58,402 nt of DNA from Octopus bimaculoides (taxonomy: Eukaryota): NCBI RefSeq assembly GCF_001194135.2, contig NC_068982.1, forward strand, positions 12,355,232 through 12,413,633, written 5' to 3'. The notes under the pieces were generated by a model that made no database searches, was not told the origin of the DNA, and worked only from the letters and a program-made list of their open reading frames with translations. Position 1 is the first letter of the stretch. Every line of letters begins with the position of its first letter. The translations under genes and the position numbers were made by a program. Shown here in pieces: positions 5,809 to 57,548 of this stretch.

Positions 5809-5856
<48 letters not shown>

Positions 5857-6027
5857 TACACATATATATATACGACAGGCTTCTTTCAGTTTCCGTCTAC
5901 CAAATCCACTCACAAGGCTTTGGTCAGCCTGAGGCTATAGTTGAAGACACTTGCCCAAGGTGTCACGCAGTGGAACTGAATCCAGAATCATGTGGTTGGG
6001 AAGCAAACTTCTTACCACACAGCCACT
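5604..6027 (-). mobile_element. tRNA-derived SINE (family A)
   Basis: Reverse-complement homolog of 58-448 with an internal (CA)n. Confidence 0.9.
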
Positions 6028-13510: not shown

Positions 13511-15907
13511 GAATAATGACACATATACACACATACATACACACCTATGTACATATATACACGCATACATACTAACATACATACACACACAAACATATAT
13601 ACACATGTACATATATAGATAATATATATATACATATTTACATACATATGTACATACATGCACAAACACACAGAGAACACACTCACCCCCCATGTATATA
13701 TATATTTGGTGGTGGAGGGTTCTATAACATTCTATAACTCTGCAAACTTTTAGAGAGATTGATAAATCGTTAGAAATTATATTTGTTTCACTTCAAGTGC
13801 TCTCATCTGTAAAAGTACCAAATTTTAAGTCTGGAACTTTAAAATACTCTTCCACTGTTTTAAAATTGCTAAATCATTCCATTTAAAGAGATAAAAAATA
13901 AGCATATATGAAAAGAAACTAAATAACACAGAGAAATGACCACACACAGAAAACTATTTATTTATTATTTTTATACCGGAATAAAATATCAACTTTCAAA
14001 TATCAAAAATCTGTATTTTCACGAACAGGCTGAGATTACTAGATTAATAATGTATTTTATGCTCAATTTTAAGTGCATGTTTTCACTTACTTTTGAACCA
14101 ATCCAACACAACTTCCCAATTTTTAGCATACGTTGTTTTTGCTTAGACTGTATTTAAACCAAAGAACTCTATAGAATTTAAAATATTTTAATAGTATGCT
14201 TCATGGGAATCTTTATTCTTTTGTGGGCATGGCCTTGTGTTTTAGAAATTTATTTCACAAGCATGTAGTTATGGGTTCAAAGCCACTGCATGGCACCTTC
14301 GGCTAATGCCTTCTGCTATAGCCTCAAATTGACCAATTCTTCATAAGTGAAAATGGTTGACAGTAACAGTGTGGAGCTTATATATATATATATATATATA
14401 TATATNNNNNNNNNNNNNNNNNNNNNNNNNNNNNNNNNNNNNNNNNNNNNNNNNNNNNNNNNNNNNNNNNNNNNNNNNNNNNNNNNNNNNNNNNNNNNNN
14501 NNNNNNNNNNNNNNNNNNNNNNNNNNNNNNNNNNNNNNNNNNNNNNNNNNNNNNNNNNNNNNNNNNNNNNNNNNNNNNNNNNNNNNNNNNNNNNNNNNNN
14601 NNNNNNNNNNNNNNNNNNNNNNNNNNNNNNNNNNNNNNATATATATATATATATATATATATAATAACTCCATGTTTGAAGAGAGGTGTGGTTTGGTGGT
14701 AGAAATAGAATCTGACCAAAGAAAATTTGCTTCTGTGAATTTTGTTTGACCCATGAAAGCATGGAATATTGATTATCAAAACAATGATGATGATGTGTGT
14801 GTGTGCAACATGTAAAAACTGGATATAAAAAATGATAATTAAGATTTGCTGAATCTTACAAGGGTCAATTGGCCTTAGTTTTTACAACATAGTCAGAAGA
14901 GGAAGAATAGTGTCCATTATCTTTTTTGCAAAATCTTCAAGACTGTCAGATGTGAAACAGAAACTGAGGACTTAGTTTTGATGTTTGCAACATAGAGGGC
15001 ACCACTAAAGGTGCTCAGGGACCAGGTGGCAGCATTAAACCAGATGATGCAAGTATGTCTAAAATAAGAGTTACAAGGTTTATATCTTTCAAGCCACACA
15101 AATAAAAGGAAATACTTTGTCTACAGTCGGAAATTGAAGAAGCAACAGTCTTCAACACATACCAGCATTTTTAATTCTATTTAAATGATACTGACTTTTA
15201 TATAGTTGTGGGTCTTCACCCATCCGTTCAGGTCAGGCAACTTGGCTGGATCAATGTAATTGTTCTACTCTAGACATCCCAATCGAGTGATGTGGCACGA
15301 ATGTCTGGCTTGGATTTTAGTGACGTTGGTCTTTCTCAAGCTGAAATATCTCATCTGTGACTACCAGGACCACAGATGTTAGCAACAATTCAATAACTAA
15401 ACTGGTCACCCCTGGCCTTTGGCAGCTTTTTATCTGTTCATCTACTCAGCATTTAGTCATTATTTGCCATTAAGTTCATCTGCCAAAATAGTTTACAACC
15501 ACCATGCTGTATCCCATGATTTTAAATTACTTTGGCTTTGGTGTTTAGATGCTATTTAATCCAAGGCTGGGACCTCGACAGGAACTACTACTCCAGGTCA
15601 GAGTAGACCTTGGAACAATAATAGATCAGAGGTGGTTCTCCATTCCTCAAAACCTGGGAACTCCTAAACCAGGACTCCAATACAAGATGCAGTCCAAAGC
15701 CATACCCAGAACTTAAGGAATAAATATTTTCCTTTGTGATGTTTCTGTAATATAAGTGAGTGTAACACAAAATAAATATCCAATAAAAAAAAAATGATTG
15801 CTGCCATAGAATATTGGTACTGAAGTTTTATTAACAGCTTGAAACGTATCTTTTACTGTTATACTGGATTAATATTTTTTGTTACTTTTAGGAATATTAT
15901 AAATATT

Positions 15908-23914: not shown

Positions 23915-25943
23915 TTAATTATGGTTGTAATTTTAATTAGTTGAAATTTATCTTTGGCTCCTCACTCCATTAAGTAATGTTAGTCTCTCTGTCCAGTAAA
24001 AAATATCTTCATGCAGAAGCCATCCATGAAAACTTTCTTCATGTTATTATGTTACTTAAACACTGAATATTTTCCACTCAAATTTCTATGTATTCTTTCT
24101 GTCATTCCAAAGTACAGTAAGCACGAATAAGACTATGTCTTATAGAGGAGGATTAATAATGCTAAAACATGTCTAGAGCTGTCATTTTGCTTATCAAAGC
24201 CAAGATTCATCTATGAATGTATGCTCCATTCAATTTTTAATCTATTTGGATTTCAGAGTTATCTCCCTTTCCTTTCTTGGCAAGATTTATCATTAAAGCT
24301 AATTATTTTCCTCTTCATGACATGTATAATTTTAATCGGTAACAACATATTTTGTATTCTCCATTAGCACCTCCTCCATCTACTTTAGTTGTAGTTGTAT
24401 TTTGTATAGAACTAGACATCCAGTAGTTGTATATTATTGAGAGCTTATATGGTGGCTCTCTTGAGAAGTCTATAGCCAAAATGGATAGATCATAGTGATG
24501 GCTCACTTGAATTAACAAGCACAGCTTCCTCCTGATTAACTATATGTTTCTATTTGTTTAAATAATATGCATTAATAAACCATTTACATTTGTTATTATT
24601 GTCCTTCCTAAATATTATTTCTTACAATCAGCAACTCCCTTAAAAGCTTCTTTTATGGTCCTGACTGTCACCCTTTGCAGAGACTAGTTAAAGCAATTAA
24701 TATTAAGCCTCATTCACATTCCAGGCATGTTAGCACCAACTAATTATCTTCTTTTACTCTTAGAAATTAAATATTTTCAGCATAAAAATATTTACTTTAG
24801 ACTCAAAATTTTATCTTTAGAGATTTCTAGTCTTTAATAAATAACTTCAAAGCTATACAATGAAATTGTTTTCATATATAGGTGCAATTATTTAATCATT
24901 CCAGTTTGTTTTTGTATGTATGTAGGAATCTTAATTAAATATATATTTCGTTTTGTTAGTTTTGGTAAGAAATTGTAAATATATTTGTTCTAACATCTAA
25001 CATTCTTCATTTAAAACCTACAAGGTCACTTACAGAAATATCTAAATGTTTTGGCTACATTGTATTACTTCATATCTATTAAATATTTTTACATCAACAA
25101 ACAAGTGTTTCTGTTGTGTTGTTCCACTACTGTACTTTTACAATTTACTGTATTCTGATTAGGATGCCTCTATTTTTAGTTATTCCCATCCATTCACAGC
25201 TGCAGTTGAGTAGCTATTGCATTAACTTCCACATTCCTGTCAGTTGATGGGAAATCCACTAGACAAAAATATCAGACTACAGAAAAATAAAATCAAGAAA
25301 AATGTTTCATATCTTCTTATAGAATGCATTGTATAGTATCTGAATACATTTGAAGAATTATCAGATGTTTTGATGTCATATTCATTTGCTAGATTTTTTC
25401 CCAGGCACTCATAAGAATTGGTAGACATTTTGGTGTAATATCCTTTTTGTTAAAATTCAAAAATCTCTGTGTTGCTTATTTTGTTAAAATTACTAACTCA
25501 TTTTATTTATTTATAAACAGATGTATGATTGGATAACCTTTTATTTTAATCGAAATGCAGTTATTAAGTATCAGAGAATAAAACAGCTAAATCAGGTCTC
25601 ATTTGATTCACTTAAATATTTTTTCAGCTTTGCAATACTTAATTTTAGAATTTCATTAGAAAAAAAATTTAATTAAAAAAAAATAAACACGAAAATAATT
25701 GTTTTTGTTTCTTTTGTTTCCAATGTCTGTTATTTTATAAATCTGTAAAGTTTCCTTTCTTTTCAGTGTGATTCTTCATTTTTGATACAGTATTTAAAGA
25801 TAAAAACCATTGTAATCATCAAATATATGATAGAAAAATCATTGTTTTTGTACAAAAAACTTGCTTGATGTTGCTAACAAACATACTAATATATGCGTGT
25901 GTGTATCTACGTATGTGTGTGCATGATGATATTATATTTATAT

Positions 25944-26050
25944 AGGAGTGGCTGTGTGGTAAGTAGCTCGCTTACCAATCACATGGTTCCAGGTTCAGTA
26001 TCACTGCGTGGCACCTTGGGCAAGTGTCTTCTGCTATAGCCTCGGGCTAA
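25944..26050 (+). mobile_element. Family A SINE 5' part running into a gap
   Basis: GGAGTGGCTGTGTGGTAAGTAGC...GCCTCGGGC. Confidence 0.85.
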
Positions 26051-26150
26051 NNNNNNNNNNNNNNNNNNNNNNNNNNNNNNNNNNNNNNNNNNNNNNNNNN
26101 NNNNNNNNNNNNNNNNNNNNNNNNNNNNNNNNNNNNNNNNNNNNNNNNNN

Positions 26151-29100
26151 CACCCGTTCACCATCCAGGTAGAGCCAAAGATGCCTCAACCTCAGCGCAT
26201 ATTTGCGCATCAACAGCCAAGGCATCCCCAGCCCACCCTTTAAAGGTTGTTGGCAGCAAATAGAGCGTCTTACAAGTGGATTCGAGCCCTTCCACAAAAC
26301 GTGGAAGAGCTGTCTTTCCAACTTGATCAACCACGAATCAAGGCAAGGAACGACGAATAGGCGGTAGGTTATGACCGATGCAATGACCACATTGGCTACC
26401 TCCGCCCTCCCTTTCAGGGATAGCCACCGCCAAGACCAGGTCTTGACTATGTGGGTCACCTTGCTCGATACCTCAGCTCAGTTCTTCTCTATTTCGAGGT
26501 CTGGTCCAAACCAAACTCCGAACTACCGAGTCGATGTTATTGTAAATTTCAATGATCCATCTAAGGAAGCCAAGACCCAGGCCGAACTGTGCCAGAACGG
26601 ACACCAGGTAGCGATGGTCAACCTTATCGAACGCCTTAGATTGGTCTAAATGGACCAGTGCCCCACCCTTGCCAGAATCGCTATTAGACCCCTCTTAAGT
26701 GTACCGTATAAGATGGAGATTATCCTGGATGGTTCTGCCGGGAACGGCACATGTCTGTGCTTCCTCGATTAGACCATCCGCGACACGCGCCAATCTTTTC
26801 GATAACACTTTGGCTAAAATCTTCAACTCTGTGTTTAAGCAGAGTGATGGGCCGAAAATTATCAACGGAATCCCCCTTGTTCGAGTCCTTTCTGACAAGC
26901 GTCACCACTCCCCGGCGTACAGATCTAAGAAGTAACCCATTCTGCTGCCACTTTGCGTAGACATTCGCCAGCAGGTGCCCGAACAAGTCTGGCATACTCT
27001 TATACAACTCGTAGGGTAAACCATCGTGTCCCGGCGCCTTACCCGCGCCGCAGTCTGCTATAGCCTCAATTACCTCCTCAGGTGTGATTGGCCCTTCACA
27101 GCACTCCGCGTCCCGCCCCAATAGGCGCGGCAGCCCGGCGAGGAAGTCCGTTAGGTCCTCCCTGCTATCCGGTCCGCCTCCCCCACCGAAAAGCTGGGCG
27201 AAGTGCTCCTGAAAAGCCTCACACATCTCCTCGGGCTCGTCTATCAACTTACCTTGTTGGTTCGTCAAAGATCGGATTGTAGCATCATTGCCACGTTGGG
27301 CTTCCACCTTGATTCCCTCACAACCCATAGCATGAAGTCTAGCCCTGACAATGCAACCCTTGTGTTTGGCTTCGAGGTGCTGGTTTAACGCCAGTCTCTT
27401 GGCCTTCACCTGAATCGCAGAGCTAGTTCTCATTGCTTCCTCTAACTCCTTAACTAAAACTGATTCCCTCCTAGTCTCACTAGCCACTAAACCTATACTA
27501 TATCTAATAGACTCAAATTTTATGGCTCGTTTGAGGGCATACCACCATTTATTATTAATAATGGAACCAGTTAATGCCCTCTGAATCAACAACCTAATCC
27601 GATCACTGTACTCCTTAATCGCCAAAAGGGACGTATTAAGTTTCCAGTAGCCGGAGCCTCTATTATATAGCTTATCTATGTCAAGCCTACAGGTGATCAT
27701 TTCATGATCACTGTAGCTGACTGGGTAAAACTGTGGACACTTAGCTATATTTCTATCTATTTTTCTAATTAACACTCTATCTATGTATGACCTGGAAGAT
27801 CCGTCGCTATTTGACCAAGTCCACATTGGAGCGTTCGGAAATTCCAACCTATAAGGGTCTGCTAGCTCAAAGCGACTTAGCAGTTCCAGGAAGCAAGATT
27901 TACCTTTTCTAGTAGTTCTCGAGCCAACATAATCTATGCGTGCCTCGCAGATTGTGTTAAAGTCACCTAGCACAACTAAAGAATGTGATGTACCGAGAAA
28001 CTTCTCCAGATTCCGAAAATAATCACTTTGCCCGGATGGCTAAGGTGCATAAATTGCAACCAGTTTGAAAACTTTACCATGGCTGAACGTCAAGTCTATG
28101 ATGACCAGCCTACCTTCTAGATCTGAAAAAATTAACTTTTTCTCAGAAACCCGGTTTCTTTTTAATAGGACCAACACCCGCCCTCCCCCTAGAAGGACAG
28201 CCTGGAGAGAAAAAATTCTCGTAGTCATTCAACAGGGGGAGAAGATCTCTTGGCCTCCTTAACCGGGTCTCTGTAGTAACAATAACATCCAAATTCCGCA
28301 ACATACATGAATGTTTGACGTTGCTTACCTCTGCATCAGTGGTTCGAGGTTCCTTCGTTCGCGTTTTCTTTCTCCTTTTTCTGGGCTCGTGGCGTATTTG
28401 GACTAAGGTCCTCGTAAATATATGGAGAAAAATCCATTCTGAGAGTCCTACGTCGTGAATGAATTCGGACTTAATCCGTCCGTTATCCTTCCGGCCTATC
28501 CTGTAGATGAGAAAGTCTTTTGATGATGTTCTTTCTACCTGTTTGGCAGATGAAATAGCTGCCAAACGGTTAATCAGTCTATTATTTGATGCCTTGATGG
28601 CCATGTAGGTATTTTCTTTTTCTTTCTCGTTCTTCTTTTTTAAGTTCAGTTTAGTAGGGGTGGTCTGTGTTTTTTTTCTTCTTTTTTCTTTTGGAAACAG
28701 TCGATCATTCCTCCTCTCAATCTTTCTCTTTGGTGTTGGTACTGGCTTTCATTTGTTGTTTCTTCTAATTCTTCTTCTTCTTCTTTTTCTTTCGGTATAC
28801 ATTCCAACCTGATGTGGCCCTTCAACCCGCAGTTAAAACACCTTGGTTTTCTTCCTTCAACAAATATTATCAATCTTTCTTCTCCGCCTACATTTATGAT
28901 TTCCGCAATCTCTTCAAGGGTTGCGACTTCTGCTTGAATTAGCATTGTCCCTTCCAATTCTCCTCCTTTTCCACAGAGGCCTGGAGTATAGTTATTTTGT
29001 CCTCTAGGCCCATCGTGATAGCTGCCACTAAACAGGTGGCGTCAACTTCTGGAGGGATGTTGTCGACTTTCACCTTTGACGTTCTTCTTCCCATATATAC

Positions 29101-29797
29101 GGGAAGAAGAACCACCTCCTCCCTTCTGAGGGTCTCCGAGGAGTACTTCTTGGCTGCTTCCTCTGACCTAAACCTCACTTCGACCGTTCCAAATCTTTTG
29201 CCACGGTTAATATACGTATTATCAGGCCAAATAGGTTTGAGGCATTTTTCCACAATTTTATCCTCTATTTTATATATCCTTTTTTTTTCCAATGTTGTAG
29301 GTTTTATACAATATTCTCCTCCTGTTAACTATGTTAGTTGTTTCTTCCGGAGTAGCCACTTGAATTTCAGACCCCTCTTTTTTAGTATTGACATGTATCT
29401 TTGCAGATTGCTTCTCTCCGTGTTTAACTGGGTTTCTTTTCTTCCCGCTGCCTCAGCGAACTTTTTGGGTGACACTGCCGGTGATTTCTTCTCTTCAAAA
29501 AAGTCTGATTCTCTTGGTGTCACTGCCGGTGAAATTCTTTCTTCACCTGCTTCAGACACAGGTGAGCATGAAAATGGTGCAAGCAAAGAAGTTTCCATTT
29601 TTTTTTTCACAAAATTGACTTAAAAGGCCACAAGATATAATAACAATAATTCTTCCGCAGGGGGGAATTTCAACAAGCAGCTTCCAAAAAAACAATCAAC
29701 AGTTCTTTTCAACAAAACAGTAACAACTCACCACAGTACTTCAACCAAACAAAACACAGAGAAAAAGTAAAACGTACCAACAACAGGAGACTTGCAC
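26151..29797 (-). mobile_element. L1/Tx1-clade LINE, 5'-complete and inactivated
   Basis: ORF1 pieces 29610-28646 with the CCHC knuckle CFNCGLKGHIRLEC. ORF2 has APE motifs (NLDVIVTTETRL, LGDFN, SYIDRVL, SDH, WKLN) and RT motifs (GKAPGHDGLP, FRPITLLN, QTCAVPGRTIQDNL, AFDKVDH). Several frameshifts and an RT core deletion. Confidence 0.95.
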
Positions 29798-34997: not shown

Positions 34998-37050
34998 CGT
35001 TTTATAGGTGCTATGCTTGAACTGGATTGATGGAAACTAATAAAATTTTAGTGTTGTATCTGATTATACTTACCCTCTCTCTATATATATCATGTGATAT
35101 TGAGTTATATGAGGAATTAAAGTACATTGCATATAATATAAGCTATTTAGTATAGTAAATTGGTGTGCTGCATGGAGTTACTATCCTATGAATATTCCTG
35201 CCTAGTTAGTCTAACTTCATCATGGTTTTAGTAATTAAACTATTTATTCCTTTCTATAGTGTTCCACCCTACTGATCATATTATTATTTTTATAAAAGCA
35301 TTTATGTAAGTAGACCTCCTAATTATGTACCCCCCCCCCATAGGAAACTATATTATCATGTATGTATTAGCACTGGTAACTTTACAACTTATACCTCTTA
35401 ACTCATAATCAATATATAGTTAGCATATTTTATTGCCCCAGTATTCCATTAGTAAATACTTAGATCAGTCTTTATAGATACCACCCAATAAGTAAATAAT
35501 TAAGTATATGAACAAATATTAAACTAATTCTGTAATTTTCTCTCTCTTTTGTAGAAAAGTTTGGTATATGTACAAAATTTATCTTTTTGGTTATATCTTT
35601 CTTGATAATCCTAAATTTTATCTTTATACAACATAACAATATTGTTTAAAATCAATCACCTATAGTACCCCTTGATAAAATTTCCTCTGTATTATCATCA
35701 TTGGTTTTATTAGTGTCTTGCCCCTTTAATTGGTAATTAACATCTTGATTTGAGGTCTTCCACTTCCCAGCCTCCTTATAGTCAGTTACTTTAACTACTT
35801 CAAAATAATCTTGACAAGTTTTATGACCCTACCCACTATGTTCTGTTAACTCTCTCCTGCCCTTTCCTAAGAGACACAATCCTCTAGTCTTAGATTTGGC
35901 AATTGATAAATAAGACTAATAAATTAAAACTGAACCAAAATCCGTTACAAGCTATGACACCCAACAAACTTTTTTCTTGATGTCTAGTAAATGCTAAGCT
36001 GAAGTGGTGGCAGCATGCACTTTGTCTGTCTTCTTACTCTATTAGAGTATTTAAGTAAAATTATATTAATGTGTCCGACTGATTAAAAAATTCTATTTAT
36101 TTATTTATGCAGCTGAGGATAGCCTTGCATTTAAATTGATATAATGATTGCATTGTTCAATTAAATGAAGCCGCTTGAATCGGTCGTACTGTATTATCAT
36201 CTCTGGATATCCTGTTGCTTATTTTGATTTTATTCACCTTATTTTGAGTTGTACAGGTAATAGCGCAATAATTTTTGATGCTTCAACTTAAGTACCTAAC
36301 TCAACTGAAACTCAATCTATATGTATATATATATATACGTGTATATATATTTCTCTCTATATATGTATATATACGTATATATATATATATATATATATAT
36401 GTACATATATATGTATATAAACGTGTATATGTATATATATTTATATACATATATATACGTATATGTGTGTGTGTATATATATATATATATATANNNNNNN
36501 NNNNNNNNNNNNNNNNNNNNNNNNNNNNNNNNNNNNNNNNNNNNNNNNNNNNNNNNNNNNNNNNNNNNNNNNNNNNNNNNNNNNNNNNNNNNNNNNNNNN
36601 NNNNNNNNNNNNNNNNNNNNNNNNNNNNNNNNNNNNNNNNNNNNNNNNNNNNNNNNNNNNNNNNNNNNNNNNNNNNNNNNNNNNNNNNNNNNNNNNNNNN
36701 NNNNNNNNNNNNNNNNNNNNNNNNNNNNNNNNNNNNNNNNNNNNNNNNNNNNNNNNNNNNNNNNNNNNNNNNNNNNNNNNNNNNNNNNNNNNNNNNNNNN
36801 NNNNNNNNNNNNNNNNNNNNNNNNNNNNNNNNNNNNNNNNNNNNNNNNNNNNNNNNNNNNNNNNNNNNNNNNNNNNNNNNNNNNNNNNNNNNNNNNNNNN
36901 NNNNNNNNNNNNNNNNNNNNNNNNNNNNNNNNNNNNNNNNNNNNNNNNNNNNNNNNNNNNNNNNNNNNNNNNNNNNNNNNNNNNNNNNNNNNNNNNNNNN
37001 NNNNNNNNNNNNNNNNNNNNNNNNNNNNNNNNNNNNNNNNNNNNTATATA

Positions 37051-37086
<36 letters not shown>

Positions 37087-38974
37087 TACACGCACATTAT
37101 ACATGTATATATATTCATATATATGTGTATATATGTATATTCATGTATATGTGTGTGTATATATTATATGAAAGTGTGTGTATGTATATTACGTGTTAAA
37201 AAGAATGCTACAAAGCTGAAGTACTTCATCTAAGGGAGATCTCTTTAAAGATTGCGTTAAAAAACACAGCATACTTCAAGGCAGACAAAACAAAATTGAC
37301 CTGAAATTGAATGAAAGCAGTAGATATCAATATTTTGCGGTTATTTCTACTTCTCAGTGTTACGTACTCCTCCACTTCCGAAACTATTCACCTTAGCCAG
37401 ATAGAGGTGTATATACAAATAGTGTAATATCTATTTGCTGATATGTTTATTTAATAGAAGTATTTTTGAAAGCAGTATTTGAAATGCTTTTGCGCCTGAT
37501 ATGCATGGTGTATGTGAAATTTTTATTCACCTTAACCTAATTAATTTACTTCCATCCATTTTATATAGAAATTAATATGTATGCTCTTGTGTTTTCATAT
37601 CTATGCTGACAAAATCATTTCATTACATTTATGCGCATGAAAGGAATGAATATGGTGCGCAAACTGTTTCTTGGATGGGTTTTTGTCAGTTCAATATATG
37701 TTTTCAACACACTGTTATCTCTCCTTAATGTTAGAAATATTGCAATGGTCATTCAACCTTGGTTATGCAATTAAAAGATATATTATGGTTAGAATTATGG
37801 ATGCATAATTTAGTTCTATATGTTTTCACAAAAGATTTTTCTTACATTAGGTGTGGTAGAATATGAAATTTATGAAGTTTTTGTTAATAAATTTATAGTT
37901 TAACAAGGAGGAAAAGGTTTGTTTAACAGATTAAACATTATACAACAGTAAGACATTATTGCTCAACTGCTTGAGCTAATAAGGTAACCTCTACTGGTAG
38001 CTTGACTTGTTAAAATTTTCAGCCAAACCTCATTTTTATGCTCTAACATTTTAAAAACGGGAAGGATACATTAAATAATTGTGTAAAACAATGTCTGAGA
38101 AAAGCTCTTCTCTCTCACAGCTAACTAGACAGTAAGACCTAAATATATTTATTTCTAGAAAAACCTCAGCAAAAAACAAAACGGAGCTAACAAAGTATTC
38201 ATCAAACACAACAGTGATCTTCTTCTCTTACAATTTAATGTATCCCAGGGAATTCTATTTAGAGCTAAGCAAACAGGTAATGACTTTACACGTTCATACT
38301 CTGAAGAGATATGGACATTAACTGCTCTGCCGGTAGTTCTTCAATGAATGTGATTTAAAGAGAAAATCTACTAATTCGGCTTTCAGTATTTTAATTCATT
38401 TTTCTTCTTAATGGACTATCAGAAGAGGAAGAACAATGTCCATTATTCTTCAGATTGACAAGGAGCAAGGAGTATATTTTTGTACCGGCGACCTAGTTCT
38501 GAATACTAGCGAACGGGTGTACACTGCTAAAGGCACTCAAGGGCTAGATGTTAAACTGAGCAATAATTTGTGTCTGCCATCCACTAGCTCTGACGAGCTT
38601 CCACACAGTTTCCAACCACCAAATTTCACTCACAGGGCGTTGGTTAATCTGAGTTTACAACAGAAGACATCTTCCTAAAGAATCAAACACTTAAAATTAC
38701 ATAACTACAAAGAGAACTTCATGAGGAAAGAGCCATATCTGCATTCAAAAAAACATATCAGTACAAACACTTACCATATCCTCAATATAGTTTCATTAAT
38801 GATGTGGGCATTGCTTTCATCTACGACTTAATATGCATTTCACACATACTGAAATATATAAACATCATAATTTTTGTATTTAAGTGGAGTCTTTGTAATT
38901 GAATACTTAACAAATGTTTCAAATTTTGGTACAAAGCTAGCAAGTTTGGGGGAGGGGTAAGTCGATTACATTGT

Positions 38975-39365
38975 CTTCAGTCCATTCAGTCGTGCCCGCC
39001 ACACAACCTTTTTTGTCATATGCAGCAGACAAAGGAAAACTGCTTGACTTTTCCAGTCAAAGGAAGACGGCGGGGCGATCTTCACAATGAAGACGGCTGA
39101 TAGCCGGATCCGTCCTACACAGGACAACAACTGTTCAACATGCTTCCACAAGTCAGCAATGCTTGAGCACAGTACAAGTGCATGCAGAATGGTTTCGTGG
39201 CTCTGTGTACATCTTGGGCCGGCGCAGCTGACGACACTACCATGCCTGTATAGATTATCCAAACCGACAATACCCCTTATTGCACTGCAAGGTCAGAAAT
39301 TTCTGGAAATTAGCCATGGGCTCCGGCCCGAAAAGACTTGCCAATTGATTTTCATTGGCGCCTAA
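38975..39365 (-). mobile_element. Tx1-family ORF2 C-terminal (zf-RVT) fragment
   Basis: CAGPRCTQSHETILHALVLC...LWKHVEQLL, i.e. the C-C-H-C knuckle region of L1/Tx1. Confidence 0.75.
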
Positions 39366-43135: not shown

Positions 43136-43249
43136 CTATATAAATGGCTACTTACGATTTTGTCTGTAATTACAAGCATCGTTTTTACATTCTGCAATGG
43201 AAAAAATAGATAAATTTTCAAGTCTTGCGTGCTTCAATAATCGGAATAT

Positions 43250-44745: not shown

Positions 44746-47700
44746 ATCCTGAGAACCAGCTATGTTGGTCGAATTGGGCATACTGCCCTAGCAATTAACA
44801 ATTCCCTCTTGAAACAAGGGGAACACATAACAATTACTTCCAAAAAGCAATAATAGAGTTCAACGAACTACAAATGTAACAAGAAAAATCCAACAGATTG
44901 ACAACAGTAGAGGTAAACTCACGATAAAGCAGCAAAATAACCAAAAAACTTATTCACAGTTTAACTTGTAGCAAGTGTGATTTTTAATTACCCACTAGGG
45001 GCGAACATAGCGGGGACAATACATGACACATGGGGACATGAAACAAGAAAATAAAAAGAAAAAAAAACAAAAGAAATCACACAAACGTATGAGGATATGA
45101 ACAACACGTGACAGACCAGCCGAGAGCGAGAAATGTATGCCTATCCGCTGGAAGCCTACCGTCAGCTACATAAGGAAACTTTTCTCGCTATTTCCTCAGT
45201 GAGTTGGGATGTACGGTCGACTTCAGATCTGCGGCAGAGAGGAGTTTATTTCGCAGGCAGCCTCAGCTATCCTTTGACGGGTACGTTTGTTCCTGTCCTT
45301 CAGCAGAAGTCGTTACATATTTGTTTTCCTATTTTACACCGCATACCTTATGTACCAACTGCATGTGAAAATATTGTGTATATATTCTGACCATTCTTTC
45401 AAGATGTATTCCACCAGCTTTGCCGTGTTAATGCTCTTTAACGGGTTGAATAAATCGTCACATTTTAAGCTTCTGATTTTCTCATTTCTTCCTTTATCTA
45501 CACGCACACGTATACTGGAACTCAAACTAGCTTTATCCATCAACGCAACTACCCCCGTTAAAAACTACTGAAAATGACGTGTTATTTGGGTTAAAGCATT
45601 TAATGGAATTGCAAGAACCCACAGAACCAGTACTCGATAGTGATTCCAATTGCATTGAAGTAAGCGGCTACAATACCTCGAGGAATTAATCGCAGGTTAA
45701 TATCACCAATCGGTACATGTACACAGCAGGTAGAAATTACTTGTAAGGAAATATGAACTCACAATTCGTGAACTGCAAACCGGAAAAATTACCCACCATC
45801 ACAACTATTATCATTACCACCACCATCTCTACCATAACTATGTATTTTTCTCTTTATGAGGAAAATTGGTTTCGACAGTGAACATTTAGTAATTCAATCA
45901 CAGGAATCTATACTCATCAAATCACTGTGAGCAGTATTTTTTTTTTCATAAACACATGTGCTCATAAGAGCACATTATGTTTTGTTTATTCAGTTTGGTG
46001 GTTATAAATGTCACATAATGTGACAAGGCTGAAGGTTTGAATTACTGATACAATTGAGAAAGAGAGAGAGAGAGAACTGGAAAGACACGGCCCTAGTACT
46101 CAACTATTAATATATCTATTGACTTCTAAAGGAAAGGCAAAGTTGTCTTCGACATGATTTGAACTCGAATCGCAAAGAGCCGAGAAAAATATCGCATTCC
46201 AACATACTAGCTCAGCTGTTCTCAAACGCTGTGCTGTGAGTTTCCCAAAGTATTACTTAAAACTTCAAGAAATCTATAATTCTTGAGCACCTTGAAAAAT
46301 GTGTTATTCATAATTTTATGACACACACGAAGGATTAATAAAACAAGGAAATTCATAGCTTTTTTTACGATTTTCTAAATTTCTAACATTAAAACGGCGT
46401 TCATTTTCTACCTTTCATTGTGTGACACGAAGTCAGGAAGATTGTTAAACGATAGTTTAACGACTCCAGAGATGGTATGTGACAGTAACAGAAATTGAGC
46501 AACTGATTAAATGACTTGCGATATTCCTTAAGTTTCAGTCTTAATTTATGCCTATGTCAACCTTGTTTTTCACTCTTCCTGCTGTTGATAAAATAAGTAC
46601 TGGTTATATGTTGGTATGTTTGAGACTGTATCCGTTTTTTTTTTTAATTCGTAGCCTTATGCCTAAATTAGAAATCAATATACAGAATTTCGGAGGTTGT
46701 ACTTGTCTAACAATTCATTTAATTTGAGACCGTGTGTTGAAACTAAAGGAATTGAAGCGTGGTAAACTCATTTTAGTCATTCAAAAACGCACAGAAACTG
46801 TGATGTGAATGTGCAAGTGACCAGATCATTGACAATGCGACGAAAATTTTGACGCTAGGTAATAAAAGATTGGGTTACTGGGTGTTTTTGAATGGCAAAA
46901 ATTAGTCTTCCTTGTTGCAGTTGCTAAGATACTGAAGGTTTTAAAACATGAGTTATGAAAAATAATTGAATTACTTTTTCGCGTGACGTTACAATCTTCA
47001 TAACAATCGGCTGTAAATAGAAATGAAACCAGTATGAAAATGAGAAAGGGTCAAACAGGAGATACAAGGAGGGGGAGTTATTATTAGCTACAGATCTTAT
47101 TCTTAGATGGGAAAAAAAGCTAAATTTATAAAACTGAGATTAAAAGAAAATACTGTTTGGTACATAACAATAGTCTTAACGCCACAAACACTCCAAGTTA
47201 GCTTAGCTATTGATATTTTTGTAGATAGAAGAGAATTTTCTTTGTTTTTTTTATCCTTAGACACAAGGCTAAACCATTAATCTTTAACCTTTGATTAGAA
47301 ATAAGTGTCTTTACAATGTATTATCATTTCTCCTCTGTTTTCATTTACCAGTTTTTAAAAGTACACGTTACCTCGTCCGATCGGAAACTTTTTGTCCCAA
47401 ACTCCATGTTCCATAAAGTTATACCGATCAAAATTTTGTAATTGGAAACACTAATGTGAGGGTAATTGTTGCTATTGCCCTCTCTCCTATTGTTGTTCAT
47501 AAATGATGACGAGACCACCGACGGAATAACATATTGGACGTCCTAATTTTAGCTCAATAATTCGCATCCACTGATGGCATTTTTACACATACAATGTGTG
47601 TGTGTGTGTGTGTGTATCTCTATAATATTCAAAATGATTTTTAAAAAAACATGTTTATTATGAACTTCCGGTAACGCATGCCCATCGATAAACAGTAACC

Positions 47701-49724
47701 GGCCAGTGTGAAGTATTCATGACCGTACTGCAGGTTAATGCATGGTATAGATTCCTATATTATAAGAATTTGTTGTGAAAATATTTTTGGGAAGGTAAAA
47801 AAAAAAATAGTGTACAAGCAAAGATACATTCTGACACGCATCACAATTTCTTTCAAAATTTTAAATTTCATTTTGTAGATATGTGATGTATGTCAGTATG
47901 TATGTGTGTTATCAAAATAAATATTTTTCCGTATTAAATTTCAATATAATTATAATCTTCACACTTTGAAAGATATTTGTAAAAAATTTCATTTAAAAAT
48001 ACCCATTTTTCCGAAAGTTATGAGGAAACAAACCCGACTCATGTGAATTTTCTGAAACTCTTCTCCCCACAGCCTCGAATATTTTTATTCACAACAAATT
48101 CCAATATAATCGGAATCTACACTACATGAAGCCTATTTGTAGCAAATCTCATTTTTTTAAATCCATTTTTCTGGAAGTTATGAGGAAACATTCACTTTTG
48201 TGAACGTATGCATATTGCATACATAAGTAATACGAAAATTATATAAGTAATACTTACTAACATAAGTAATACGAAAATTATATTGTTTATCGGCTTGTTT
48301 TGCGTCACTTTCATTTTGTATATAATAATATTTAATTATATAGCTGCATGTTATATATAATCAAACAATATACTTTCTTCGGCCGGTTTGTTTCAAAAGG
48401 GAGACAACAATGTGAATGAGATGGGCTCAGTTTTTCACTACACATAAACATAGATAGGACAGCAGTATTTATGATGATATTGTGCTTAATGTTTAGTAAC
48501 GAATAGTAACTGCATTTAAAATGCATCGAATTGTGTGTGTATAATACATTCAAAATTTGTATAGAAGTACAAACAAACGGAACGACCGGAAAATACACAC
48601 ATAGAATGTCGCTAAATCCCCATCGGTTATCGTCCAAAGGATCATAATTTTACACCTTTAATAGCATCGTTCCCATTTGGTGGCGTCAGCGACGAGAAGC
48701 TGCAGGGAAATAGCGAGTAAACAAAGGACCAAACAGGACAGAATGTGAACATAGAAATAAATATACATTATGCAAACAAAGTAATATAAAATAAGGCCTT
48801 GCAGCGCAAGACAAGACGAATAGTGGACAGAGACGAAAACACTAGCCTTTTATTCTTCTTCGCAGAATAATTATTAATTATTTCGTATGTGTATTTGGTG
48901 TGCAAGATTCTTGTTGTGAATATGTGTGTTGAAAGAAATACTATTAAACCTTGAGACCGAACCAGTGCGTGTGTTTATTACCGGCATAATGCCTCTCCCA
49001 AGGTTTAATAGTAATTATTAATTAATCCCCCTTTTTAAATCTATGCAAGCTAACAAGTGAGAATCTACGTAGTTGCTCTAATTGCTGATACTAGCAGTCA
49101 AAATCTCTCTCATAGTATACCCTATAATCTTTAAAAATGAACATATTGGATAATGTACTCAGGGTACGCTATGCTGAAAAAAGAGAGGGTGGCCGTTGCT
49201 GGAATGTCATTGATCACACGCAATGTAATGTTAATCAACAAACCCACTTGTCTCACTTTTCTCAAGAATACAAGAAAATCCTAACACAATTCCTTTCGTA
49301 TCTACCAGTGTTTTTGCAGTTCACTTACAATAACAACAACGAGATTATACGTGAGTTTCTATATGGTCACTCTAGCTGCTAGAAATAACAGCAAAATTCC
49401 CCTCTTATTACATTTTGTTTTAAAAATAAGACTAAAATAATGTGATCTTCGGTTTCCTGCACATATGAAATTACATGAGTGGTCATGCAGGAAAGTCTTT
49501 GATCATAGGCTTTTTTTTTATCAACAACAACACCATAAAAATGTAGACAAGAACAATGAGAAGTTCAAGTCATCATCATTATCAATAGCAGCAACAATAA
49601 GAAAGACGAAGAGCATGAAAAGAGGATATATTTATAGCCATTAGACTTACGAGGAATATTTTTAGTCAAATACGTCATTAGTACGGTTTTCTTCAATTCT
49701 GTAACAATAAAAAAAGACACAGAT

Positions 49725-50014: not shown

Positions 50015-50515
50015 GGAACACCATTGAAAGAACAGTGTCAATGTAGTATCACTGATGAAATATAACAGAAGGAACATCATTGCTAGAGCACTATTAATGT
50101 AACGTTACCTATGTTACATCAATTATGCAACTCTATTGGTGTGACACTACATATGGAACATCAGTGATGGGACACCACTGATGGAACACTTTTCATGGAA
50201 AACCATTCATGGAACAGCTTTGACATAACATCATAGGAATACCATTGATGTAACGCCATTCATGTAACATCACTAACGCCATTCAAGTAATATCACCATT
50301 GATGTTACATCACGGATGTAACACCTTTAACGAAAAAACCATTGACGTAATGCCATTCATGTAACACCTTTGATGTAACACTATTGATATCACTTCACTG
50401 ATATAAAATCACTCATCTAAAACCTTTGATGTAATACTGTTGATGTAACAGCATCGATGTAGCATCATTGATGTAACACTATTGATATAACACCACTAAT
50501 ATAACATTACACATT
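50015..50515. repeat. Degenerate 14-bp minisatellite, consensus GATGTAACACCATT
   Basis: For example GATGTAACAGCATC GATGTAGCATCATT GATGTAACACTATT GATATAACACCACT; roughly 35 units. Confidence 0.85.
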
Positions 50516-50620
50516 ATATTAACTTAATACTTTTGTAAATTTAGTGCACTTAGTTCATGAATTTATCAAAATTCTCATCGAAAATAATGAGTCCACAATC
50601 AGGACTAGATTAAAGTATGT

Positions 50621-51500: not shown

Positions 51501-51621
51501 AAGTATGCATTCGTCACTGGATGAATGACTATTGTGCTAGAAATATCTCTGTTTCTACATGTTAATTAATGTAATGCGAAAAATATTTCACAGGTAAAGT
51601 AAATATCCATATCAAACTTAC

Positions 51622-51675
51622 TGTCTGGTGCTTTAATTGAGAAAATTGTCCCGATCGGGGTGTTGATAATTGGAC
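51622..51675 (-). CDS. 54-nt phase 1-1 exon candidate C (GPIINTPIGTIFSIKAPD)
   Basis: ctatattttgcag|...|gtaagt; open frame; paralog of 54098-54151. Confidence 0.6.
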
Positions 51676-52739
51676 CTGCAAAATATAGCTTCCGTATAAC
51701 GTAGGCGTTTCAATGATTAAGTGTTTCTTATATAAATATAAAACCTGGGTCATTCATGAATGGTAAAGCAGGAAATTAAACGCTTAAAATTTTCTTCAAA
51801 TTATAAGGAACGTCTATTTTTGATAGATTTTTTTTTTTGTTATAAATTGTCACATATTTGCCGTAAAATCTAAAGTTTGTATCATATCTTCTCAAAACGA
51901 ACAATGAATATAATTAGAGATGATTTAGAACAGCTACAAGATATGAATGAGTTTAGTGCCGCCTGAATCCAGCTATATTTGCCCTTCATTCCGCTTTCAT
52001 CAAACGATTTACAAGTAATGTACTATCTCTTTATTAGGTACTACGGCCCGAACACAGAGGGGGACACTACAAGGACAGACACTACGTGGGGTAGATAGAA
52101 CGAATGATGAATGGAGCGAATTACTTACAATGAATTGATGAAATGGCTTACGAGCCCCACAAGACTCGCAGCTTCATTTGACTGTTCTTTTCATACAGTT
52201 CTTATACAGTTTTAAGATCTTTTTATTCTGTAATCGTTATATATGGCAATAACTCTTCTGGCGTTATAACTTTCGGCAGATTATTGTATCGCACATATAG
52301 CCCACTCTAATCGACTGGACCCCTCCCCAAAAGTTTCGGGCCTTGTGCCTAGAGTAGAAAGGTATATTATAAGTCTGCTTTCTAACAACATGAATCTGGG
52401 TTCAGTCCCACTGCGTTGTGCCTTGAGCAGGTGATTTCTACTGTAGCCTCAGATCGACAAAAACATTGTGAGTAGATTTGGTAGACAGGAACTGAAATAA
52501 GCTTGGTATATATGTGTGTGTGCGTGTGTTTGTGTGTGTGTGTGTGTTAGCAAAATGTGCTAATAAAGCATCCAAGATGCTAAATTCGTAAAACAGAAGA
52601 AACTATTATTTCTTCGTTTCAACAATAAACTGCAATGTGACGTATACTTCCTTAACATAATACTTTTGCATTCAATTCATGAATTTTGACATGAATAGGT
52701 CCACATGATTCCAATTCATGATTGTGGACATGAATAGGC

Positions 52740-53085
52740 CGCGAGGACGCGTTAGTGGCAGGTCAGCAAAGAATGACCTGAGTCGCGTGACGTAAGATGT
52801 GGGGTCCGCATTCGGTAAGTCGACAGGAGCCAACATCTGTCCAGAAAGTGCTAAAGTGGTGCCATACAGGAGCTCAGTGGAGGAGAAACCCAAATCCTCC
52901 TTGACAGCTGAGCGGCACCCCAGCAGAACAAAGGTGAAGAACTCGGACCAATTATGAGGATCAGGAGCAGCATGAATAGTTTTAAGTTGGCGGTGGAATT
53001 GTTCCACCACTCTGTTCGCGGCGGGATGGTAACTTGCGGTGTGGATGTGCTGAACTCCGAGCAATCTCGAAAGCTCACGAAACAG
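52740..53085 (-). mobile_element. Gypsy LTR retrotransposon integrase fragment
   Basis: TASYHPAANRVVEQFHRQLK...VLLGCRSAVKEDLGFSSTELLYGTTLAL (rve C-terminal half). Confidence 0.9.
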
Positions 53086-54097
53086 ACAAACTTCAAATTG
53101 GGGTTAGTCAGTGTATGACAATGAAGGAAATTTAACATTCATGATTTATCTCAACATTATGAGAATCGTATATTTATGAAAATTTTATTATTGTAAATTG
53201 TTACATGGTTGTAAAAACGAAAGTGTTTATCTTGTTTTGACGAAACCAATTATGATTATGATGGTTTTTAGCGTCACCGTTGAATTGGCCTTTTAATTAT
53301 GTATCTGTTCATATGTGATACAAATTGCTATTTCAAATTAATACTGCTTCTGTTGCATATAACGAATTGTATATTTAAGTTGTCCGTCAACTGCGACATC
53401 AGTCATTTTTCAATCATTTGTTTACTCTATCAGTAACGGTAGATTTTGTTTTAGCATGCGATTATCGGTGGACACTTCTACTAACCAAAGTGGGACTGAT
53501 GTGTCGTCTGGTACGGATACATTTTTGCAATTTTTAACACTGTACGTCTACAAGAGATACTCTCTCAAGACGCAATTGCACGTATCCATTTTCATAAAAA
53601 AAGCTTACTCAACTGCCTCTATGGTAGATTACAGTTTTGCATCAATACATCGTGAATCACACGTATTAATTCAATTGAACTTTTGTGGGATTTTTATTCT
53701 CGATCACGTTTGACAAATATTCCCACAAGACTAATGGGAAAAAGTCAAAGTCTACATCAGAGTTTCTCAAACTTTCGGGGCCACTGCCACCCTTATGGAC
53801 ACATTATATCCCCAGCACCCCTACCCCTATTTTTATGTATAAATAAATATTTTATATTTTACTAATTTATATATACTATGAATCATTTGATTTTTAATAT
53901 AATATTATATATTTTGTATACAATATTATAATAATAATATAATAAATTCATAGCGTCCCCAATTCACTGCCGTCTTCCCAACGCCTCCTTTTTGCGCTAG
54001 AAATATTTCTGTCCTAGTTGAAACAATTTTCAACATGTTATTCAATGTAATGCGAAAGATATCTGAAGGATAACGTAAATATCTATATCGAACTTAC

Positions 54098-54151
54098 CGT
54101 CTGGTGTTTCACTTGCGACAATTTTATCGATGGTGTCGTCGATAACTGGAG
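54098..54151 (-). CDS. 54-nt phase 1-1 exon candidate B (APVIDDTIDKIVASETPD)
   Basis: ctatattttgcag|...|gtaagt; open frame. Confidence 0.6.
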
Positions 54152-54621
54152 CTGCAAAATATAGCTTTCGTATAATGACAGACATTTCAATGATTAAATG
54201 TTTTTGGATTAAGTTTTTCAGGAGAGGCAAAGCAGGAAATTAAACTCTTAAAGTTTTCTCCAAATTGAAAGGATTGTTTATTTATTGATAGATTTCTCAC
54301 ATATTTGCCGTAAAATCTAAACTTTGTATCGTATCTTCTCAAAACGAAAAATGATTATTATTAGAGTGATAATTTAGAACAGCTACAAGATCTGGATGTA
54401 TTTAGTGTCGCCTGAACCCAGGTATATTTGCTTTTCATTCCGCTTTCAGCAAACGATTTACATGTTATGTACTGCAGTTGATTCAATTTTCTCAATGAAC
54501 TTTCCTCGTGCAACATGATAATCACTAGCTATGTCGGTTACAACTTTGCGATAGAGCAAATTAAACTGTGAAGAGTTGCTGTCTGAGTAATTGCTTACCC
54601 ACAGAGAGCATATCAACTTAC

Positions 54622-54675
54622 CTGATGCAGCTTCAGTGGTAGAAGGAGTATTAACATCACTGGAGGAAGACAGAG
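54622..54675 (-). CDS. 54-nt phase 1-1 exon candidate A (ALSSSSDVNTPSTTEAAS)
   Basis: ctatctttgttttcag|...|gtaagttgatat; same length, phase and donor context as B and C; S/T-rich. Confidence 0.6.
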
Positions 54676-55260
54676 CTGAAAACAAAGATAGCTTATAGGT
54701 TTTGATATGAAACATACTTTCGTGGATAGTGGGTGTTACAACCAACCGAGTGCTGGATTAAATGTTATCTGGTATATTACAAACACAAAATAAAATTTTG
54801 CCTTTCATTGTTCCGGATGTAGATAAAAGAATTATCAAAGAAGAAATGGCGTGAAATAGTTTGTGCTAGGGTCACTGTCAGTAGGAATAATCGTTCTGCT
54901 ATGTATCTCGTTGCCTACAATACAGAGTAGGAAAGCTCTTTGTCTCAGTATCATAATTAAGGCGAAGGAACATTAACGTGTGTACATACATACATTAATA
55001 CACATATACATATATATTTTACACAATTTATACATATGTTCCAGACAGGCGATTCGATTCCTTTCGAGGTGAATCGAATAAGTTGCAGTGAGTGACTATA
55101 ACAATAGCAATATATTGATATGAATCATTCTCGAGCAACTCGGGCAAGTTGTCTCGTCTCTCTCTGACATTCAATGTTCTTTAACACTCGGCATCGTACA
55201 GGGTGCTTTACTTGGAAGCCATCGGGCAGTAAATTGGCATATGTACAAAGTCACATATAC

Positions 55261-57383: not shown

Positions 57384-57548
57384 CTCACACACAGGCATGA
57401 GTATGTGTTTAAGAAGTTCACTTTAGAGCCATGCAGTTAGGAGTTTGGTCCTGCTGCTTGGATGTTGTTGGCTTGCCTCCTGTTCTATAGACACTGGTCA
57501 ACCAGCATCTTATGAGTAAAATTGGTAGACGGAAACTGAAGAAGCTGG

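Follow-up and report, generated by a model that had tools for sequence, protein, structure and literature searches.

Do homologous exons of a single octopus gene diverge faster than the introns between them, and if so, what does this say about the gene? The question is raised by a 58,402-nt stretch of Octopus bimaculoides DNA (contig NC_068982.1 of assembly GCF_001194135.2, positions 12,355,232 to 12,413,633; hereafter the window, in which positions are counted from the first letter). An earlier note on this DNA described three minus-strand candidate exons, here called A, B and C, and read them as a homologous array under diversifying selection. We found that all three are coding sequence of LOC128247134, an annotated gene, and that B and C stem from a genuine tandem duplication of an exon within this orphan gene, which is the secure part of the finding.

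Exons A, B and C in LOC128247134

A, B and C are consecutive on the minus strand and 54 nt long apiece. Exon A (54622-54675) is the 3′ portion of annotated coding exon 1 and encodes LSSSSDVNTPSTTEAAS; exon B (54098-54151, phase 1-1) is annotated coding exon 2 and encodes PVIDDTIDKIVASETPD; exon C (51622-51675, phase 1-1) is annotated coding exon 3 and encodes PIINTPIGTIFSIKAPD. All three carry ttt(t/g)cag on the acceptor side and gtaagtt(x)gatat on the donor side. The earlier note had given these coordinates, lengths and splice contexts, and the openness of the exons in phase 1-1, and all were exact on re-examination. GC content is 0.43-0.46 in the exons and 0.28-0.37 in their flanks; exon A, which has both a strong acceptor and a strong donor, stands at 0.46 against 0.34-0.37. 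A strict CAG/TAG + 54 nt + GTRAG pattern occurs at 7 sites in the window, with 5.3 expected from shuffles, and among the 7 only A, B and C, serial on one strand, have the full ttt(t/g)cag and gtaagtt contexts.

The spliced A+B+C peptide in frame 2, the frame that corresponds to intron phase 1-1, was compared with 1.84 billion representatives in an exhaustive HMMER search and matched XP_052821915.1 at 100% over 53 residues. This RefSeq entry, 'uncharacterized protein LOC128247134 [Octopus bimaculoides]', has 117 amino acids encoded by seven mini-exons. Its locus (L001; CM046602.1 of GCA_001194135.2, 12,384,048-12,419,946) agrees with the window at every one of the 29,579 bases compared. This independent annotation agrees with the proposal that A, B and C are consecutive coding exons in frame 2. 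Mapping of the protein onto the window placed coding exon 1, which contains A, at 54622-54715 (94 nt). B and C are followed on the same minus strand by exon 4 (49651-49698, 48 nt, phase 1-1, LKKTVLMTYLTKNIP), exon 5 (46975-47010, 36 nt, phase 1-1, DCYEDCNVTRK), exon 6 (43156-43191, 36 nt, phase 1-1, CKNDACNYRQN) and the last coding exon, 7 (38817-38848, 32 nt with the stop, CVKCILSRR*). Strong GT-AG sites bound all six introns, the internal exons are without exception phase 1-1, and the 117-codon frame is continuously open. Simple scans for further exons by splice sites, GC and open reading frames (ORFs) were unhelpful alone, though they listed what proved to be exons 4 and 6.

The choice of frame matters for everything that follows. 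Frame 2 is open in A, B and C. Frame 0, absent from the earlier note, is likewise open in all three, and frame 1 is closed. In frame 2, 8, 11 and 8 of 17 codons in A, B and C have the purine-any base-pyrimidine (RNY) form, against 0, 0 and 1 of 18 in frame 0; the whole coding sequence in frame has 46 of 118. The differences between B and C fall at codon positions 1, 2 and 3 as 9, 5 and 2 in frame 2, and as 5, 2 and 9 in frame 0. Were frame 0 the true one, B and C would share 11/18 residues, and the all-nonsynonymous pattern of change would be an artefact of wrong-frame reading. This possibility was rejected because RNY periodicity and the RefSeq protein both pick frame 2, and because a synonymous divergence (dS) of 1.3 would be needed beside an intron divergence of 0.15.

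A whole-protein search with XP_052821915.1 returned only itself, and its cluster is a singleton. No Pfam family (best E = 0.41) or PDB relative (best E = 0.6) was found for the protein or its cysteine framework. The other HMMER matches to the A+B+C peptide (P0002-P0004) are long, internally repetitive proteins that hit a short motif many times, and were not taken as homologues. A word-indexed protein search with the same peptide gave no match in either frame 2 or frame 0; the frame-2 negative is false and both are uninformative, because the 53-residue query sits at 100% identity in a database protein, and such negatives are untrustworthy for short queries. LOC128247134 is a lineage-restricted orphan gene, annotated but uncharacterised. 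No literature relevant to the locus or to octopus exon duplication was found, and the locus is named in no paper found. Expression of the exons and a function of the protein are inferred, as is the cause of the divergence described below.

Tandem cassettes around exons B and C

Cassette B (53993-54473, minus strand) comprises exon B with ~320 nt of the intron before it and ~105 nt of the intron after it, as delimited with MAFFT, blastn and nhmmer, and cassette C (51533-52024, minus strand) is its paralogue in the MAFFT alignment. The two cassettes, of ~480 bp, are 83% identical overall without gaps (blastn E = 3e-111) and were also recovered in the repeat search (D16, D19), in line with the duplication that the earlier note had described. 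They differ by six indel events, all of which lie in the introns. Searches with nhmmer and tblastn covered 64.7 kb, made up of the window and the additional sequence of locus L001 upstream of it, and revealed no other copy of the cassette and no other paralogous exon: the two full copies and the partial one lie within 3 kb on the same strand. The alternative raised by the earlier note, that the cassette is a dispersed repeat, has no support within the 64.7 kb.

The partial copy (53094-53262, minus strand) lies in the B-C intron, and is ~60% identical to the upstream-intron part of the cassettes (nhmmer with a B/C profile, E = 5e-10, profile positions 120-295). It is not followed by an exon, and it ends ~10 nt before a retroelement integrase-like open frame (52675-53103, minus strand), which has a Pfam rve_3 match below the cut-off (E = 0.04) and a HPAANRVVEQFHRQLK motif that we take to be of the retroelement integrase type. 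An exon-less partial copy means that the array had at least one further unit, since decayed; the decayed copy at 53094-53262 suggests that a fourth unit was lost from it. The same intron holds a short interspersed nuclear element (SINE) copy (52346-52547, minus strand; repeat families D9, D14, D15 and I23) that adjoins a (CA)n tract, and the families of this copy also occur at 52-249, 5834-6027, 25939-26047 and 57478-57540.

The relation of exon A to the pair is less clear. Adjacent exons share the same length and intron phase throughout A, B and C; A and B are spaced 524 nt apart, and the B-C unit measures ~508 nt once inserted material is removed. Sequence likeness is weak: exon A is identical to B and C at 21/54 and 20/54 sites, with p = 0.024 on the acceptor side and p = 0.23 on the donor side. 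The homologous array of three proposed in the earlier note thus stands for B and C as tandem cassette copies; A has their length, phase and position, and may be homologous to them, possibly as an older array member, which is plausible rather than demonstrated.

The N-terminal part of the protein would, on this evidence, have been lengthened by tandem duplication of a ~500-bp unit with one 54-nt exon between phase-1 introns, the gain or loss of which would leave the reading frame intact. B and C would be the youngest pair (~15% intron divergence), with an older, exon-less remnant between them and A maybe an older member. Later retroelement and SINE insertions would have expanded the B-C intron from ~450 nt to 2.4 kb.

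Tandem exon duplication is reportedly described by Kondrashov and Koonin (2001) and by Letunic, Copley and Bork (2002). Like such exons, B and C are adjacent, have the same length and phase, show similarity in exon and flank, and keep the frame by being symmetric. Unlike many described cases, in which the duplicates are mutually exclusive and encode similar protein, B and C stand together in one model and share 6/18 residues.

Exon and intron divergence and its possible causes

B and C are identical at 38/54 exon sites (70.4%), against 348/410 (84.9%) over all aligned intron, 43/49 (88%) over the upstream 50 nt and 41/50 (82%) over the downstream 50 nt. Recounting bore out the hand count of the earlier note: 38/54 sites and 6/18 residues are identical, and none of the codon changes in frame 2 is purely synonymous. 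The higher divergence of the exon, which that note had left to a full alignment, is seen there. The excess of mismatches in the exon gave a one-sided Fisher p = 0.009; the exon pair was chosen after reading 58 kb, so this and the other p-values for the excess overstate the evidence. Because G+C and CpG are more frequent in the exon than in the intron, a composition-matched expectation was built from the intron mismatch rates for A/T, G/C and CpG sites, and amounted to 8.7 mismatches against the 16 observed (P = 0.009). At non-CpG sites only, mismatch was 26% in the exon and 14% in the intron (p = 0.04). In non-overlapping 54-site blocks, the introns were 85, 74, 89, 89, 87 and 83% identical and the exon 70%, the lowest of the 7 but no dramatic outlier.

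In frame 2, the proportions of nonsynonymous and synonymous differences between B and C were pN = 0.32 and pS = 0.125. The corresponding divergences, dN = 0.42 and dS = 0.14, give dN/dS ~3, a ratio that rests on 16 substitutions in one 17-18-codon exon pair, with ~1.5 synonymous differences on 12 synonymous sites. The dS is about equal to the intron divergence (0.15). Transversions and transitions were 9:7 in the exon and 23:39 in the intron. The exon body is thus GC- and CpG-richer than the intron and has ~2 times its substitutions, nearly all of them amino-acid changing.

We give about an even chance to the following explanation: the 5′ half of the orphan gene LOC128247134 has grown by mini-exon duplication, and the duplicated part encodes a weakly constrained spacer, perhaps with some positive selection. 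Selection would have preserved the splice sites and a length of exactly 54 nt, as the indel counts suggest (0 in the exon, 6 in the introns), with the encoded residues little or not constrained. The exon excess would then be the sum of weak spacer constraint, higher mutability and possibly some positive selection, and CpG/GC mutability would partly cover the doubled substitution rate. Low-complexity spacers built from arrays of short symmetric exons are familiar from titin PEVK and mucin-like linkers. The likeness lies in a short tandem exon, rich in S/T/P and acidic residues, under little sequence constraint; unlike those linkers, LOC128247134 has only three units, shows no sequence similarity to them and encodes a whole protein of 117 residues.

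Several observations weigh against this explanation. Pure relaxation predicts equal divergence of exon and intron, yet there is a residual excess (p = 0.009; 0.04 at non-CpG sites), for which chance or extra mutability account just in part. The exons were found in no other protein of a 5.8-billion-sequence collection, so no independent transcript-derived ORF was found. AlphaFold, run on XP_052821915.1 as a single sequence, yields no fold with confidence (mean pLDDT 51), the gene as recorded spans precisely the interval between ATG and stop, exons 4, 6 and 7 are at background GC, and the annotated start codon sits in the acceptor-like, polypyrimidine region of exon A.

Diversifying (positive) selection on B and C, and earlier on A, with neutral introns, as in toxin, immune and reproductive proteins, is a possible but doubtful rival. 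The dN/dS of ~3 in the annotated frame with dS about equal to the intron divergence, the 16 mismatches where 8.7 were expected (P = 0.009) in the most diverged 54-site block, and a transversion excess found in the exon (9:7) and not in the intron (23:39) all point that way, and the C-terminal six-cysteine module described below is compatible with a secreted peptide. Against these stand a single exon pair, in which ~1.5 synonymous differences over 12 sites prevent dN versus dS from reaching significance alone, the p = 0.04 without CpG, the intron block at 74% beside the exon at 70%, the post-hoc choice from 58 kb, and the lack of a homologue. Of the selection argument in the earlier note, the higher divergence of the exon and the excess of nonsynonymous change were borne out, and the step from there to diversifying selection on B and C is possible but unproven, given the p-value without CpG, the variable introns and the single pair. 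Exons that evolve faster than introns are known from venom and toxin genes, such as crotaline snake PLA2 and the conotoxins, and there too the coding part is more diverged than adjacent introns and the change mostly non-synonymous. Those cases are built on entire families of numerous paralogues, with secretion proven and expression in a gland, whereas here there is one 54-nt exon pair in an orphan gene, and it is the low-complexity N-terminal region that diverges, not the cysteine-rich part. An octopus-specific secreted peptide precursor, with a pro-region extended by duplication of the 54-nt cassette exon and then diversified by positive selection, strikes us as quite improbable; if true, it would represent exon-level accelerated evolution as in toxin and immune families, at a very early stage of 2-3 units.

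That the gene model is a prediction artefact, made of a 500-bp non-coding duplication with splice-like motifs whose differences reflect rate heterogeneity or chance, we consider improbable. The protein is an orphan singleton, its recorded range is confined to coding sequence, its start codon falls within a polypyrimidine tract, repeats abound in the region, locus L001 has no second annotated gene over its 36 kb, and intron divergence is itself uneven, at 74-89% identity per block. What such an artefact would leave to coincidence are seven consecutive mini-exons with canonical strong splice sites around an open 117-codon frame, RNY periodicity and a GC rise in exactly the annotated frame and exons, 0 indels in the exon against 6 in the intron, and the restriction of the full splice contexts to the serial, same-strand A, B and C even though the bare 54-nt pattern is near chance (7 vs 5.3). 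To our knowledge, the NCBI pipeline does not normally release Gnomon models that rest on ab initio prediction alone. Very improbable indeed is the use of B and C as mutually exclusive or cassette alternative exons, as in Dscam, with regulatory or RNA-pairing elements in the conserved introns. B and C are equal in length, symmetric, neighbouring tandem duplicates with exon-adjacent intron flanks 82-88% identical, and a 16-nt, 94% complementary pair joins exon C (51633-51648) to intron 1 (54484-54499); by a rough calculation, however, chance alone would produce about one such match in 3.4 kb of AT-rich DNA. The sole available model holds B and C together, and the frame is kept with both included, so that exclusivity is not forced; the alternative splicing that the earlier note had thought possible gains no support from it. 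Dscam likewise has arrays of tandem duplicated exons, and positive selection on its variable exons is among the subjects treated in PMC3236188. Its exons encode Ig half-domains, number dozens and are used one at a time through docking/selector RNA pairing, none of which is seen here.

The B/C pair is a small new example of known processes, namely tandem exon duplication and possibly accelerated exon divergence, in an already annotated gene. If the amino-acid excess is true, it would be a compact example of a young, lineage-restricted gene growing and diversifying through a duplicated, frame-neutral mini-exon, in cephalopods, where there are many such novel genes without known function. As it stands, the result is mainly a correct reading of gene structure, with an evolutionary annotation for one uncharacterised RefSeq locus, and it neither opens nor settles a larger question.

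Ends of the protein and surroundings of the gene

XP_052821915.1 reads MFHIKTYKLSLFSA-LSSSSDVNTPSTTEAAS-A-PVIDDTIDKIVASETPD-G-PIINTPIGTIFSIKAPD-K-LKKTVLMTYLTKNIP-P-DCYEDCNVTRK-K-CKNDACNYRQN-L-CVKCILSRR. An S/T/P/D-rich N-terminal half, modelled with low confidence, is followed by six cysteines within the C-terminal 34 residues, in the pattern C-x3-C-x7-C-x4-C-x7-C-x2-C. The earlier note had suggested a secreted, surface or immune role; its sole hint would be this six-cysteine C-terminal half. Exons 5 (46975-47010) and 6 (43156-43191) match in length (36 nt) and phase (1-1), and each codes for a C-x(3-4)-C-N motif. They may be a second, older exon duplication; similarity between their flanks was undetectable.

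The annotated ATG at 54715 is 40 nt upstream of the acceptor of exon A, and the model reads through that acceptor, so that the polypyrimidine tract (54676-54715) is translated as KLSLFSA. This translated splice-signal DNA is the only hydrophobic stretch of the protein. The hydrophobic core at the N terminus is just LSLFSAL (maximum 9-residue Kyte-Doolittle mean 1.4), and even the start codon in the model is in doubt. The N terminus is only weakly signal-peptide-like, and the KLSLFSA stretch is too weak to be called a signal peptide. The gene may in truth begin further upstream, in an exon missing from the annotation; the sequence of locus L001 upstream of the window is mostly assembly gaps. 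A 95-amino-acid open frame that runs through exon A has no encoding contig on record, and an Rfam search and two metagenome pattern scans returned nothing relevant.

The window is AT-rich (~33% GC) and crowded with microsatellites, SINE copies, N-gaps and open frames of retroelements. The intron between exons C and 4 holds, at 50045-50528, an array that resembles a satellite and repeats every 14 nt (CATTGATGTAACAC-like; family D8). One SINE, with the core ...TTCAGTTTCCGTCTACCAAAT..., occurs at 52-249, 5834-6027, 14221-14329, 25939-26047, 52346-52547 and 57478-57540, in both orientations and often adjoining (CA)n. Open frames resembling long interspersed nuclear elements (LINEs) lie at 26034-29300 and 38966-39262, among them a 417-amino-acid ORF with a weak endonuclease/exonuclease/phosphatase match (E = 0.002). 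Cysteine-rich ORFs among the LINE-like frames are presumably C-terminal regions of reverse transcriptases, and the last coding exon of LOC128247134 (38848-38817) is ~120 nt downstream of one of them. Very long reported 'inverted repeats' at 14372-14672 and 36444-37088 coincide with N runs in the six-frame translations, which TA/TATG microsatellite flanks, and are most likely an artefact of assembly gaps and simple repeats, not hairpins.

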